From Macrostomum lignano (taxonomy: Eukaryota): a stretch of DNA of 64,000 nt. Positions 8,491 through 12,850 of the stretch are shown piece by piece; positions within the stretch are counted from its first letter, which is position 1, and every line of letters begins with the position of its first letter. The translations under genes and the position numbers were made by a program. The stretch covers positions 124,001 through 188,000 of the forward strand of contig NIVC01000163.1 of the NCBI GenBank assembly GCA_002269645.1. Direction: 5' to 3'. The notes beneath the pieces are model-generated. The model was given only the letters and a program-made list of their open reading frames with translations. It was not told the origin of the DNA and searched no databases.

Positions 8491-8581
8491 AGAGCTGAGA
8501 AGAGACAAGCCTTGAGCGGGCCGGATTGCTATCGCAAAGTTTCAAAGGACCCGAGGGCTGGATTGAGAGGCTTCGCGGGCC
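8491..8581 (+). repeat. Dispersed repeat copy A (hAT-end-like), inverted relative to 12302-12377
   Basis: AGCTGAGAAGAGACAAGCCTTGAGCGGGCCGGATTGCTA...TTCGCGGGCC, preceded by a (GA)n tract at 8321-8490. Confidence 0.85.
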
Positions 8582-8594
8582 TATAGACACTCAC

Positions 8595-8734
8595 TTGACA
8601 ATGAAATCGCAGTTGGCCTCGGCCAGAATGCTTCGCTCATTCATGATGTGCTCCTGCTGTCGGGTCTCAACAATGTGATGCTTCTTGAGCTGCTTCAGAG
8701 CGAAACTGCGGCTGTTGTCGTTGCGGATTCGAAC
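8595..8734 (-). CDS. PRKG1: PKG exon 9 (catalytic Lys, alpha-C helix)
   Basis: VRIRNDNSRSFALKQLKKHHIVETRQQEHIMNERSILAEANCDFIV; ccaag acceptor, AA|GTGAG donor; 140 nt. Confidence 0.95.
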
Positions 8735-8869
8735 CTTGGAGCGGCGATTGAGTCGGTGATTGCCAGCCAAATAAAGGACGCTACTTCAGAAACTTCAGGT
8801 GGTGCGGTTCGCACAAAAACTAGCACAAAAAAGACGCGATTCAGATACACTAAATCGCATAGTTCAGAG

Positions 8870-11455
8870 AATTCAGTCACACACCTGAATCTGTATTCAG
8901 TCACACACCTGAATCTGTATTCAGTCACACACCTGAATCTGTATTCAGTCACACACCTGAATCTGTATTCAGTCACGCACCTGAATCTGTATTCAGTCAC
9001 ACACCTGAATCTGTATTCAGTCACACACCTGAATCTGTATTCAGTCACACACCTGAATCTGTATTCAGTCACGCACCTGAATCTGTATTCAGTCACACAC
9101 CTGAATCTGTATTCAGTCACGCACCTGAATCTGTATTCAGTCACACACCTGAATCTGTATTCAGTCACACACCTGAATCTGTATTCAGACACACACCTGA
9201 ATCTGTATTCAGTCACACACCTGAATCTGTATTCAGACACACACCTGAATCTGTATTCAGTCACACACCTGAATCTGTATTCAGACACACACCTGAATCT
9301 GTATTCAGTCACACACCTGAATCTGTATTCAGTCACACACCTGAATCTGTATTCAGTCACACACCTGAATCTGTATTCAGTCACACACCTGAATCTGTAT
9401 TTAGTCCCACACCTTAATCTGTATTCAGTCACACACCTGAATCTGTATTCAGTCACACACCTGAATCTGTATTCAGTCACACACCTGAATCTGTATTTAG
9501 TCACGCACACACCTGAATCTGTATTCAGACACACACCTGAATCTGTATTCAGTCACACACCTGAATCTGTATTCAGACACACACCTGAATCTGTATTCAG
9601 TCACACACCTGAATCTGTATTCAGTCACACACCTGAATCTGTATTCAGTCACACACCTGAATCTGTATTTAGTCCCACACCTGAATCTGTATTCAGTCAC
9701 ACACCTGAATCTGTATTCAGTCACACACCTGAATCTGTATTCAGTCACACACCTGAATCTGTATTTAGTCACGCACACACCTGAATCTGTATTCAGACAC
9801 ACACCTGAATCTGTATTCAGTCACACACCTGAATCTGTATTCAGACACACACCTGAATCTGTATTCAGTCACACACCTGAATCTGTATTTAGTCCCACAC
9901 CTGAATCTGTATTCAGTCACACACCTGAATCTGTATTCAGTCACACACCTGAATCTGTATTTAGTCCCACACCTTAATCTGTATTCAGTCACACACCTAA
10001 ATCTGTATTCAGTCACACACCTGAATCTGTATTTAGTCCCACACCTTAATCTGTATTCAGTCACACACCTGAATCTGTATTCAGTCACACACCTGAATCT
10101 GTATTCAGTCACACACCTGAATCTGTATTCAGTCACACACCTGAATCTGTATTCAGTCACACACCTGAATCTGTATTCAGTCACACACCTGAATCTGTAT
10201 TCAGACACACACCTGAATCTGTATTCAGTCACACACCTGAATCTGTATTCAGTCACACACCTGAATCTGTATTCAGTCACACACCTGAATCTGTATTCAG
10301 TCACACACCTGAATCTGTATTTAGTCCCACACCTTAATCTGTATTCAGTCACACACCTGAATCTGTATTCAGTCACACACCTGAATCTGTATTCAGTCAC
10401 ACACCTGAATCTGTATTTAGTCACGCACACACCTGAATCTGTATTCAGACACACACCTGAATCTGTATTCAGACACACACCTGAATCTGTATTCAGTCAC
10501 ACACCTGAATCTGTATTCAGTCACACACCTGAATCTGTATTTAGTCCCACACCTGAATCTGTATTCAGTCACACACCTGAATCTGTATTCAGTCACACAC
10601 CTGAATCTGTATTCAGTCATACACCTGAATCTGTATTTAGTCACGCACACACCTGAATCTGTATTCAGACACACACCTGAATCTGTATTCAGTCACACAC
10701 CTGAATCTGTATTCAGTCACACACCTGAATCTGTATTCAGACACACACCTGAATCTGTATTCAGTCACACACCTGAATCTGTATTTAGTCCCACACCTTA
10801 ATCTGTATTCAGTCACACACCTGAATCTGTATTCAGTCACACACCTGAATCTGTATTTAGTCACGCACACACCTGAATCTGTATTCAGACACACACCTGA
10901 ATCTGTATTCAGACACACACCTGAATCTGTATTCAGTCACACACCTGAATCTGTATTCAGTCACACACCTGAATCTGTATTTAGTCCCACACCTGAATCT
11001 GTATTCAGTCACACACCTGAATCTGTATTCAGTCACACACCTGAATCTGTATTCAGTCATACACCTGAATCTGTATTTAGTCACGCACACACCTGAATCT
11101 GTATTCAGTCACACACCTGAATCTGTATTCAGTCACACACCTGAATCTGTATTCAGTCACACACCTGAATCTGTATTCAGTCACACACCTGAATCTGTAT
11201 TCAGACACACACCTGAATCTGTATTCAGTCACACACCTGAATCTGTATTCAGACACACACCTGAATCTGTATTCAGTCACACACCTGAATCTGTATTCAG
11301 TCACACACCTGAATCTGTATTCAGACACACACCTGAATCTGTATTCAGACACACACCTGAATCTGTATTCAGTCACACACCTGAATCTGTATTCAGTCAC
11401 ACACCTGAATCTGTATTCAGTCACACACCTGAATCTGTATTCAGACACACACCTG
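8870..11455. repeat. 24-bp satellite ACACCTGAATCTGTATTCAGTCAC (PKG intron 8)
   Basis: Direct reading; about 2.6 kb with recurring variant blocks. Confidence 0.96.
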
Positions 11456-11485
11456 AAGCTCACAGGTAATAACAAAGCGACTCAC

Positions 11486-11573
11486 AAGCTCGACGCGACC
11501 GAAGCCGCCAACTCCAAGAGTGGCAATGATGAACAGGTCCTTCAGCGTTAAACCCTTGAATTCTTCAGATCGA
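11486..11573 (-). CDS. PRKG1: PKG exon 8 (kinase Gly-rich loop)
   Basis: RSEEFKGLTLKDLFIIATLGVGGFGRVEL; gacag acceptor, GTGAGT donor; 88 nt. Confidence 0.96.
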
Positions 11574-11676
11574 CTGTCATTGAATATGCATTTTCAAAAA
11601 AAAATCTGTTATTCCATTTCTGAAAAAATAACCTTCGATTTAAAAAAAAGGCCACGAAAATCTCAGAAAAACTCAC

Positions 11677-11751
11677 GTAGGCTGTGCAGTGCTCTCGTCT
11701 GAGTACTTCCTGCCCAGAATGGCCAGATCCCCTATGAGCTGCTTGTAAGAC
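11677..11751 (-). CDS. PRKG1: PKG exon 7
   Basis: SYKQLIGDLAILGRKYSDESTAQP; taccag acceptor, AC|GTGAG donor; 75 nt. Confidence 0.93.
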
Positions 11752-12185
11752 CTGGTAGGGTGAATGCGGATTTTATTGAGGGTATATGAGCACACACAAG
11801 CGCCAAATGAATGTGAGGCCGCGTACGCCCTTCTTAATTGAGAGGTTATCGCAAACAGTATAGATTACGAAAAGACACAAAACAAATTATAAATAAGTTA
11901 TTTTCACACTATAAGTATTAGCAGATATAAGCCCCGATAAAAGCAACTCATTTTTAGAGCGCAAATCCCAATGCTGTGAGAATGGTTTGTTATTTTTAAA
12001 AATAAAACCCACTCTAAAATTACCGAAGCAACATATCTGCTTACTCGTGCTGGGTAAGATTGCTGAAATAATGATTACTTTGCAAGTTAATAAACATAAG
12101 CTTAGAATAGGCTCCAATAAGATGATTGATTTAAACAATTAGTCAGACAGATAGCAGGGCAGAAGAGTTGACGCTCAGAACTTAC

Positions 12186-12257
12186 TCTCTATTGAGAACG
12201 AGGCAGTCCACTCCGTTAGGGTCTTCAACAATGATGTTGGCTGTGCGCACGTCCTCT
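12186..12257 (-). CDS. PRKG1: PKG exon 6 (end of CNB-B cassette)
   Basis: EDVRTANIIVEDPNGVDCLVLNR; ttcag acceptor, GA|GTAAG donor; 72 nt. Confidence 0.95.
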
Positions 12258-12284
12258 CTGAAGTGCGGGTGTACAATTTAGTCT

Positions 12285-12850
12285 TTGGGTCGGCAAACTC
12301 CGGCCCGCGAAGCCCTCGGGTCCTTTGAAACTTCCCAATAGCAATCCGGCCCGCTCAAGGCTTGTCTCTTCTCAGCTTTTTTCTCTCGTCTCCTCTCTTC
12401 TCTCCTCTCTTCTCTGCTCTCTTTTACTCTCTCTTCTCTCTTCTCTCCTCTCCTTTCCTCTCTCATCTCCTCCCTTCCCTCCTCTCATCTTCTCTCTCGT
12501 CTCCTCTCTTCTCTTCTCTCTTCTCTCCTCTCCTTTCCTCTCTCTTCTCCTTTCCTCTCTCTCCTCTCCTCTCCTCCATTCTCCTCTGCTCTCCTTTCCT
12601 CTCTCTCTCCTCTCCTTTCTCCCTCCTTTCCTCTCCCTTTCCTCTCTCTCTCTCTCTCTCTCTCTCTCTCTCTCTCTCTCTCTCTCTCTCTCTCTCTCTC
12701 TCTCCCTCTCTCTCTCTCTCGCTCTCTCTCTCCCTCTCTCTCTCCCTCTCTCCCTCTCTCTCTCTCTCTCTCTCTCTCTCTCTCTCTCTCTCTCTCTCTC
12801 TCTCTCTCTCTCTCTCTCTCCTCTCCTCTCCTTTCTTCTTTTCCCCTACT
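12285..12850 (-). repeat. Dispersed repeat copy B plus CT-rich tract
   Basis: GGGTCGGCAAACTCCGGCCCGCG resembles hAT-Charlie/MER58-type ends. 12302-12377 is the reverse complement of copy A and is followed by (CT)n. Confidence 0.85.

Follow-up and report, generated by a model that had tools for sequence, protein, structure and literature searches.

The PKG gene and its exon 6–9 block

The minus strand of the 64-kb stretch of DNA analysed here (the window) carries a PKG type I gene of 13 exons, with two alternative zipper-encoding first exons, 1a and 1b. The assignment is based on the presence of a coiled-coil/zipper, two cNMP-binding domains and a C-terminal Ser/Thr kinase. Pfam analysis revealed two cNMP_binding matches (1e-36) and a Pkinase match at 380–635 (5.4e-73), while the zipper of exon 1a scored 27.7 bits against PKcGMP_CC, under the 35-bit cut-off; by tblastn, the zipper regions were recovered with E = 2.6e-8 (exon 1a) and 3.5e-15 (exon 1b). 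Alignment to PDB PKG I-beta gave E = 4.7e-94 over the 233 residues tested. The domain order is identical to that of PRKG1 (I-alpha/I-beta; PDB 7lv3, 7t4t), from which the protein differs as a flatworm orthologue with 60–62% identity to other animals. Its nearest named relative is the Macrostomum lignano UniRef fragment P0007 (83% identity), and the protein search returned no other relative above 62%. Matches of 78–82% identity over the kinase part were rejected as close relatives, as they lack the lineage-specific residues of this gene and resemble single-exon genomic ORFs of distant animals; Macrostomum reads are evidently not represented in the collection searched.

Every intron of the gene starts with a strong GTRAGT donor and ends in an AG acceptor. 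Exon 5 (13254–13490, minus strand, as are all features below unless stated; 237 nt) ends in phase 2 and would provide the donor for a predicted exon 5–10 skip, with exon 10 (8156–8245, 90 nt) as the acceptor. Between them, exon 6 (12186–12257, 72 nt, EDVRTANIIVEDPNGVDCLVLNRE) encodes the RTA part of the CNB-B phosphate-binding cassette, exon 7 (11677–11751, 75 nt) the end of CNB-B and the linker, exon 8 (11486–11573, 88 nt) the linker and the Gly-rich loop GVGGFGRVEL, and exon 9 (8595–8734, 140 nt) the alphaC helix together with the catalytic Lys of FALK, as well as the sole in-frame ATG of a putative circle. The original prediction described exons 6–9 as a block of 72 + 75 + 88 + 140 nt; the coordinates and the AG/GT borders of all four exons agree with this, their lengths sum to 375 nt, and the exon numbering is correct with either alternative first exon.

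Both ends of the block are in phase 2, exon 5 ending in GA and exon 9 in AA. Joining exon 9 back to exon 6 would yield a 375-nt circle in which the junction reads AA+A, encoding Lys, and the native frame runs without a stop and with one in-frame ATG (HIMNE, circle position 325); the Lys codon, the open frame and the ATG had been proposed earlier and are confirmed in the sequence. The predicted back-splice junction is GATTTCATTGTCAA joined to AGAGGACGTGCGCA (also given as CTGCGATTTCATTGTCAA joined to AGAGGACGTGCGCACAGC), with the predicted junction peptide ...CDFIVKEDVRTA... The block also has the properties of an in-frame cassette, being a multiple of 3 with the frame restored at the junction: exons 5 and 10 join in frame (GA+G, encoding Glu), with a predicted 561-aa product and a predicted skip junction of GGCGCTTAACGA joined to GCTCTACCGAAC (also given as GAGAAGGCGCTTAACGA joined to GCTCTACCGAACATTCAA). 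According to an alignment to PDB 7lv3, the skip product would lack the RTA part of the phosphate-binding cassette and the remainder of CNB-B, the linker, the GVGGFGRV loop, the Lys of FALK and the Glu of alphaC. In the skip product the Pfam kinase match begins at profile position 60, and the zipper exons are intact. Translation and alignment bear out the claim that the skip is in frame and loses the end of CNB-B, the Gly-rich loop and the catalytic Lys.

An inverted repeat in introns 5 and 9

Introns 5 and 9 each contain one copy of a repeat, in inverted orientation, consisting of ~80–90 nt of unique sequence joined to a GA/CU microsatellite. The upstream arm in intron 5 (12302–12387, ~76–86 nt unique) was identified by alignment, BLAST and nhmmer, and the downstream arm in intron 9 (8491–8581, 91 nt unique) by the same methods and by cofolding. 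In the pre-mRNA, a purine (GA)n-rich tract (12382–12830) lies directly 5' of the upstream arm, and a (CU)n tract (8323–8494) directly 3' of the downstream arm, detected by TRF on the forward strand as (TC)n and (GA)n, respectively. Local alignment pairs plus-strand 8484–8581 with the reverse complement of 12302–12387. It reproduces the originally described core of 8491–8581 against 12302–12377 with 3 mismatches and one 13-nt indel. The indel is an insertion in the copy of intron 9 (~8556–8568), the bases of which are left as a bulge when the arms pair. In a BLAST search of the 64-kb window, the arm pair showed 95.5% identity over 67 nt (E = 1.9e-26). The (CT)n and (GA)n extensions of the original prediction were likewise recovered: the (CU)n of intron 9 and the (GA)n of intron 5 are complementary, and a repeat search found complementary microsatellite arms of up to 153 nt (78%), 114 nt (91%) and 102 nt (94%). 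Degenerate GA-rich DNA extends beyond 12830 to ~13180, interrupted by an AT-rich stretch at 12850–13046.

The upstream arm is separated from the exon 6 acceptor by 44 nt, and the exon 9 donor from the downstream arm by 13 nt; the spacings of 45 and 14 nt given earlier are coordinate differences between the same positions. Intron 8 is filled by a 24-nt minisatellite of ~107 copies (8871–11457; TRF), the unit of which is hairpin-capable. This array lies inside the loop closed by the arms and places 2.6 kb between the synthesis of one arm and that of the other.

The arms occur in two copies only in the 64-kb window, profile search included. Being 95% identical, they have a young look. No exact match to a 24-mer and a 23-mer of the element was found in the metagenome contigs scanned, and translation of the two open frames of the arm returned nothing at E <= 1 among 5.8e9 proteins; the source genome seems to be absent from these collections, so that neither result bears on its copy number there. 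ARAGORN found no tRNA in the arms, Rfam gave no match in 8100–13500 save a chance snoRNA at E = 0.57, and inspection by eye revealed no target-site duplication around the two copies. With no tRNA and no Rfam match, a known RNA gene or a tRNA-derived SINE was rejected as the origin of the arms, and the hallmarks of SINEs and MITEs (a tRNA/7SL/5S-derived head, terminal inverted repeats, target-site duplications) were not recognised. By our own rough estimate, a family of N copies in ~700 Mb would yield about N^2 × 4 kb / 700 Mb close pairs, one half of them inverted, so that a pair of this kind would be no surprise in a genome with more than a few hundred copies. Tandem arrays make up 46% of the window, which also contains several further inverted array pairs. 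The repeat pair is most likely a neutral product of insertion or local inverted duplication amid such arrays, as judged from the sequence.

Pairing of the arms and comparison with known circular RNAs

Folded as RNA, the two unique arms pair over 75 bp at −156.8 kcal/mol, compared with −53.6 ± 5.4 kcal/mol for dinucleotide shuffles (z = −19). The GA:CU part adds ~170 bp, and cofolding of the arms with their microsatellites gave −465 kcal/mol and 239 intermolecular bp. Folding of the pre-mRNA had been proposed as a check, and in the MFE structure of the 5335 nt from exon 5 to exon 10 the arms do pair, with 75 of 75 unique-arm pairs present and 254 pairs in all between the two repeat regions. The copies in introns 5 and 9 can, according to these models, form a duplex of ~240–250 bp in the pre-mRNA, exceeding the 30–40 nt of intron complementarity used as a criterion for circRNA exon blocks. 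For the unique arms, whose own duplex has −157 kcal/mol, the best alternative partners gave −62 and −80 kcal/mol and are shuffle-like or far weaker. Within the unit from exon 1b to the first poly(A) signal (25790–4339), the arm pair is the sole inverted repeat with E < 1e-5, while exon 1a transcripts contain a weak GA-tract partner (67% identity) at 30209–31205. The fold and the repeat comparison thus favour pairing across the exons over pairing within an intron or with other introns.

The duplex closes a 3.7-kb loop containing exons 6–9 and brings the exon 9 donor within ~57 unpaired nt of the exon 6 branch site and acceptor. The exon 6 acceptor reads cag/A, with a gacuaaa branch-like motif inside the 44-nt spacer, and the exon 9 donor reads CAA/gugagu, 13 nt off the stem, leaving the acceptor/branch region and the donor outside the stem. 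In the MFE fold, a short additional helix, CACUU:AAGUG, touches both the exon 6 acceptor and the exon 9 donor. The duplex includes two G-U pairs, and of the three arm substitutions two are G-U-compatible in the sense RNA.

Repeats of 30–40 nt are sufficient for circularization in other systems (PMC4201285), and reverse-complementary matches predict circles in an Alu-free invertebrate too (PMC5168830). Liang and Wilusz (PMC4201285) report that some repeats fail to support circularization, that a strengthened hairpin is sometimes strongly inhibitory and that G-U wobbles can prevent circle formation altogether. ADAR antagonises pairing (PMC5168830). In human ZKSCAN1, HIPK3 and EPHB4 (inverted Alu; Liang and Wilusz 2014, PMC4201285), repeats likewise flank a multi-exon block near its acceptor and donor, splice sites are canonical as in PKG, and the PKG spacing of 44/13 nt falls inside the range covered by the shortest introns that sufficed in the PMC4201285 constructs. 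The PKG repeat differs from these in being neither Alu nor a recognisable SINE, and its duplex is much longer and stabler than needed and in part a GA:CU homoduplex, the PKG circle being a predicted one. The RCMs of C. elegans and Drosophila laccase2 (PMC5168830; Kramer et al. 2015, PMC4617980) share with PKG an invertebrate setting, non-Alu complementarity and short introns, but are defined by observed back-splice junctions, whereas the PKG case is known from sequence alone. The mouse Sry circular transcript (cited in PMC4201285) also has long, nearly perfect flanking inverted repeats, although these exceed 15 kb and flank a single exon; in PKG, a housekeeping-type signalling kinase, the repeats measure ~250 bp and enclose four coding exons. 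The PKG block could also be released as a skipped lariat and circularise by the exon-skipping route (Barrett et al. 2015, PMC4479058; Zaphiropoulos 1997, cited in PMC5168830), which needs no inverted repeats; here the reciprocal exon 5–10 mRNA is in frame, and the skipped isoform is a predicted one.

In the literature searched, no relevant paper was found for Macrostomum and circular RNA, and none for flatworms, circRNA and reverse complementarity together; papers on PRKG1 circRNAs contain, by their titles and abstracts, incidental mentions only. PKG exons 6–9 are an ordinary sequence-only candidate of a well-understood circRNA class, the main value of which is as a precisely specified test case, with the junction sequences, arms and loop defined. 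Should the circle or the skip isoform exist, it would offer a clean, small and genetically tractable case of repeat-driven back-splicing in a flatworm, and would illustrate how microsatellite and repeat turnover in compact introns can give rise to new RNA structures by which a conserved signalling kinase is remodelled. Transgenesis exists in Macrostomum (PMC5730564).

Expected splicing outcome and alternative readings

The sequence observation holds in all details that can be checked, and the proposal of circRNA formation and exon skipping stands in part. Its structural prerequisites are present and stronger than stated, given the MFE pairing, the lack of a competitor within the transcription unit and a geometry equal to that of mini-introns shown by experiment to suffice, and we regard the candidate circRNA- and skipping-competent architecture at exons 6–9 as real. 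In contrast, the arguments from the in-frame, endless ORF, from the closeness of the repeats to the splice sites and from the pair as a special event proved weak. Contiguous internal exon blocks of the PKG gene are a multiple of three in 30 of 66 cases (45%), and the circle ORF is free of stops because an in-frame block in its native frame cannot hold one; the endless ORF was thus rejected as a sign of function. Of the 349 nt of intron 9, 259 are repeat DNA, as is the greater part of intron 5, and the ancestral introns would therefore have been only ~90–130 nt, so that any insertion was forced near a splice site. Proximity to the splice sites, unavoidable under insertion into such small introns, was likewise rejected as a sign of function. 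The pair is also less special than proposed in a locus with 46% tandem arrays and several other inverted array pairs.

The account towards which we lean, on the features described above, is that of a neutral, pairing-competent repeat pair giving minor back-spliced or skipped products beside linear splicing. A repeat unit of GA-rich microsatellite and unique sequence would have been inserted, or duplicated in inverted orientation, into introns 5 and 9. Where pairing between the two introns forms ahead of intron 5 splicing, the spliceosome could join exon 9 to exon 6, producing the 375-nt circle, or alternatively exon 5 to exon 10, producing an in-frame product without the kinase N-lobe. As transcription reaches the downstream arm only 3.7 kb after the upstream one, the circle and the skip are expected to be minor and not selected; such products are most likely minor at most, a by-product of repeat turnover. 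Several points weigh against even this modest outcome. The duplex is very strong and contains two G-U pairs, and over-strong hairpins and wobbles can inhibit circularization (PMC4201285); a 250-bp duplex may be edited or unwound by ADAR-type enzymes, or diced; and co-transcriptional splicing may take out intron 5 before the downstream arm has been made. A rival reading is a repeat with no measurable effect on splicing, in which intron 5 is spliced first or the duplex is dissolved by helicases or editing enzymes and linear PKG mRNA alone results. We consider this possible, if rather doubtful. It is consistent with the 3.7-kb distance to the downstream arm, the 2.6-kb minisatellite included, with the strong donors and acceptors of all introns, and with the reported effects of over-stable hairpins and G-U wobbles (PMC4201285) and of ADAR (PMC5168830), but is at odds with ~250 bp of pairing with no competitor here, where 30–40 nt suffice elsewhere. 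Exon blocks so strongly paired mostly yield at least trace circles in deep data, which also counts against a complete lack of effect.

At the other extreme, the repeat pair would be a selected device, yielding a functional exon 6–9 circRNA, possibly translated in its stop-free frame, or a kinase-dead, zipper-bearing PKG that is dominant-negative through dimerisation with full-length subunits. The open circle frame with its ATG, the in-frame skip, the retained zipper exons, the G-U compatibility of two of the three arm substitutions and the standing of the pair as the sole inverted repeat in the transcription unit are consistent with such a role, which we nevertheless judge very unlikely: 45% of blocks would be in frame anyway, two wobble-compatible transitions would arise by chance with a probability of ~1/4, the 95% identity of the arms suggests a recent pair, and the skip product may misfold, having lost half the CNB-B barrel, kinase strands beta1–3 and alphaC. 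Its boldest form is remote, namely a selected switch in which the circle would be translated round and round (repeating CNB-B tail, Gly-loop and alphaC) and/or a kinase-dead subunit would poison PKG dimers; if true, it would constitute an RNA-structure-controlled dominant-negative regulator of cGMP signalling. Effects that bypass cross-intron pairing are also highly improbable. Downstream of exon 9, the (CU)n tract could serve as a silencer of the PTB type or as an extended pyrimidine tract, and a cryptic acceptor-like ucucuucucag is readable in the arm. In intron 5, the 450–800 nt of purine-rich sequence could favour R-loops or H-DNA and thereby slow transcription, long and nearly pure GA/TC mirror repeats being present. 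Excised introns could also pair in trans, with a duplex as stable as that in cis, and feed a small-RNA or editing pathway. Such effects are inferred from motif content alone, which does not separate them from neutrality, and they leave the unique-sequence arms unexplained. Finally, the region is extremely repeat-rich, and an inverted copy could in principle stem from misassembled reads. The probability of this is close to negligible, and misassembly was rejected on the divergence of the arms (3 substitutions and the 13-nt indel) and the integrity of the intervening exons: the two microsatellites are unequal in length and internally dissimilar, and the single-copy exons enclosed by the arms read as an unbroken, correctly ordered PKG frame with canonical splice sites.

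Structure of the PKG gene

Translation of the exons named in the original prediction, together with their neighbours, gave a continuous peptide from a minus-strand cGMP-dependent protein kinase (PKG) gene, and all 233 residues aligned with human PKG I-beta (PDB 7lv3, E = 4.7e-94). Animal cGMP-dependent kinases share 57-62% identity with this peptide; among named relatives, a 158-aa fragment from Macrostomum lignano comes closest, at 83%. The full gene model was obtained by tblastn with partial PKG proteins as probes, followed by reading of the splice sites, which reproduced the predicted numbering and coordinates of exons 5-10 exactly. 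Two first exons, 1a (34059-33758, minus strand) and 1b (25790-25477, minus strand), each open with an ATG, encode an N-terminal zipper rich in heptads and close with a phase-2 donor compatible with exon 2 (24699), so that this flatworm gene has alternative first exons in a PKG I-alpha/I-beta-like layout. They are followed by 12 common exons ending in a TAA stop at 4612, with GT-AG introns in every case, and the proteins predicted from them have 683 and 686 aa. In Pfam, two cNMP-binding domains (CNB-A and CNB-B) were recognised in the product, along with a kinase domain spanning residues 380-635. Upstream of PKG on the opposite strand, 47422-49362 (+) contains a non-repetitive 646-aa ORF with several hydrophobic stretches, for which Pfam gave no match.

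Inverted repeats flanking exons 6-9 and their predicted pairing

Exons 6-9 had been proposed to lie between inverted repeats, and alignment confirmed this: 8484-8581 (+) pairs with the reverse complement of 12302-12387, with three mismatches and one 13-nt indel in the core. BLAST within the window scored the match at E = 1.9e-26, with 95.5% identity along 67 nt. The upstream arm (12302-12387, intron 5) ends 44 nt from the exon 6 acceptor and the downstream arm (8491-8581, intron 9) 13 nt from the exon 9 donor, in agreement with the proximity originally described. The complementary (CT)n/(GA)n extension was also found, as microsatellites adjoining the exon-distal side of the arms ((GA)n 8323-8494, (TC)n 12382-12830) and complementary across 100-150 nt at 78-94%. 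The order in sense RNA is GA tract, arm, 44 nt, exons 6-9, 13 nt, arm and CU tract. With tandem arrays set aside, the arm pair is the sole dispersed repeat of the window. A GA-rich tract in intron 5 (12433-12531) shows a higher-order period of ~80 nt, with units that bear a weak resemblance (84%) to the initial 19 nt of the arm, which suggests that the border between arm and microsatellite was itself tandemly duplicated.

Between the unique arms a 75-bp duplex is predicted (-156.8 kcal/mol), which contains two G-U pairs, a single mismatch and a 13-nt bulge; dinucleotide shuffles give -53.6 +/- 5.4 kcal/mol (z = -19). Cofolding of the arms with their microsatellites gave -465 kcal/mol and 239 intermolecular pairs, against only about -22 kcal/mol for each arm folded alone. 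The folding check proposed with the original prediction was borne out, the minimum free energy (MFE) structure of the 5335-nt pre-mRNA from exon 5 to exon 10 containing 75/75 unique pairs and 254 pairs joining the two repeat regions. In published work, absence of competing pairing is regarded as the key condition. Cross-exon pairing has no serious competitor here, since from exon 1b to the first post-stop AATAAA (4339) no other inverted repeat reaches E < 1e-5, and exon 1a transcripts add only a weak GA-tract partner (67% identity, ~30.2-31.2 kb). In the MFE fold the stem is prolonged by a helix between the 3' end of intron 5 (CACUU, 12266-12262) and the exon 9 donor (AAGUG, 8597-8593). Zipping of the arms would therefore hide part of both splice sites, though so short a helix may have arisen by chance.

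Repeat turnover at the locus

Tandem arrays (n = 41) occupy 46% of the 64-kb window, about three times the genome-wide share of simple and tandem repeats in M. lignano (15%, PMC5730564). Nearly each array has its own unit of 12-68 nt (for example 1832-3381, 8871-11457 and 49509-52179), and the PKG introns are largely made of such arrays. The intron 8 minisatellite (8871-11457; 24-nt unit x ~107, 94% identity) fills 2587 of 2751 nt, and its unit, ATTCAG-N8-CTGAAT, can form a 6-bp hairpin.

Several arrays form inverted pairs. Two large arrays of one 26/38-nt minisatellite family (1832-3381 and 5560-7528; alignments of up to 1.7 kb) lie in opposite orientation on either side of exons 12-13 and the 3' UTR; the distal array is probably outside the mature mRNA, since the first post-stop AATAAA precedes it. 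Further pairs are 54715-55411 with 55820-56867 (adjacent, ~400 nt apart), 16276-16897 with 41468-41931, 39642-40699 with 42521-43468, and ATAG with ATCT arrays. Inverted duplication of arrays seems recurrent here, and the abundance of arrays, several as inverted pairs, indicates that repeat turnover including inverted duplication is active at the locus.

The arms may have arisen when a microsatellite-linked element inserted twice, or when a microsatellite was duplicated locally in inverted orientation together with its flank. Neither tRNA nor Rfam matches were obtained for them, a profile of the two arms detected no further copy within the window, and no target-site duplication was visible in the flanking sequence. 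Exact-match searches of metagenome contigs and protein searches with translated open frames likewise returned no matches.

Candidate exon 6-9 circle and exon 5-10 skip

Inverted repeats of 30-40 nt in miniature introns (87 nt upstream including branch point and acceptor, 59 nt downstream) suffice for circularization (Liang and Wilusz, PMC4201285), and reverse-complementary matches are a better predictor of circles in C. elegans than intron length is, ADAR antagonising the stems (PMC5168830). The exon 6-9 architecture shows every sequence-level hallmark of this class, although the class is defined by a back-splice junction in RNA and the PKG candidate is known from genomic DNA. Back-splicing or skipping of exons 6-9 is a reasonable and precisely formulated hypothesis within an established class, and its support is architectural.

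The remaining arguments add little to a functional reading. The 375-nt block keeps the frame, but among the gene's 66 contiguous internal exon blocks 30 do so. The circle would be stop-free with one ATG, as predicted, but an in-frame block in its native frame is necessarily stop-free, so that only the ATG is additional information. In intron 9, 259 nt out of 349 are repeat DNA, as is most of intron 5 (996 nt). Ancestral intron lengths were therefore ~90-130 nt, which left no room for an insertion far from a splice site, making the closeness of the arms a consequence of intron anatomy. Two of the three arm substitutions are wobble-compatible in sense RNA, with a chance probability of about one in four. 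A selected function is improbable. That the repeats have no effect whatever is a lesser but real prospect: some repeats fail to circularize, stronger hairpins sometimes strongly inhibit and G-U wobbles matter (PMC4201285), and the predicted stem is very strong. We slightly favour a neutral repeat arrangement, possibly with low-level circle or skip by-products.

Skipping would yield a 561-aa protein with the zipper, CNB-A and the first half of CNB-B, losing RTA of the CNB-B phosphate-binding cassette, the linker, the Gly-rich loop, the catalytic Lys and alphaC; its Pfam kinase match begins at profile position 60. The proposed subunit with an intact zipper can thus safely be considered kinase-dead, but not a stable dominant negative, since the cuts would run through the cores of two domains. 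The circle produced by back-splicing would be 375 nt long and read ...CDFIVK-EDVRTA... across its junction.
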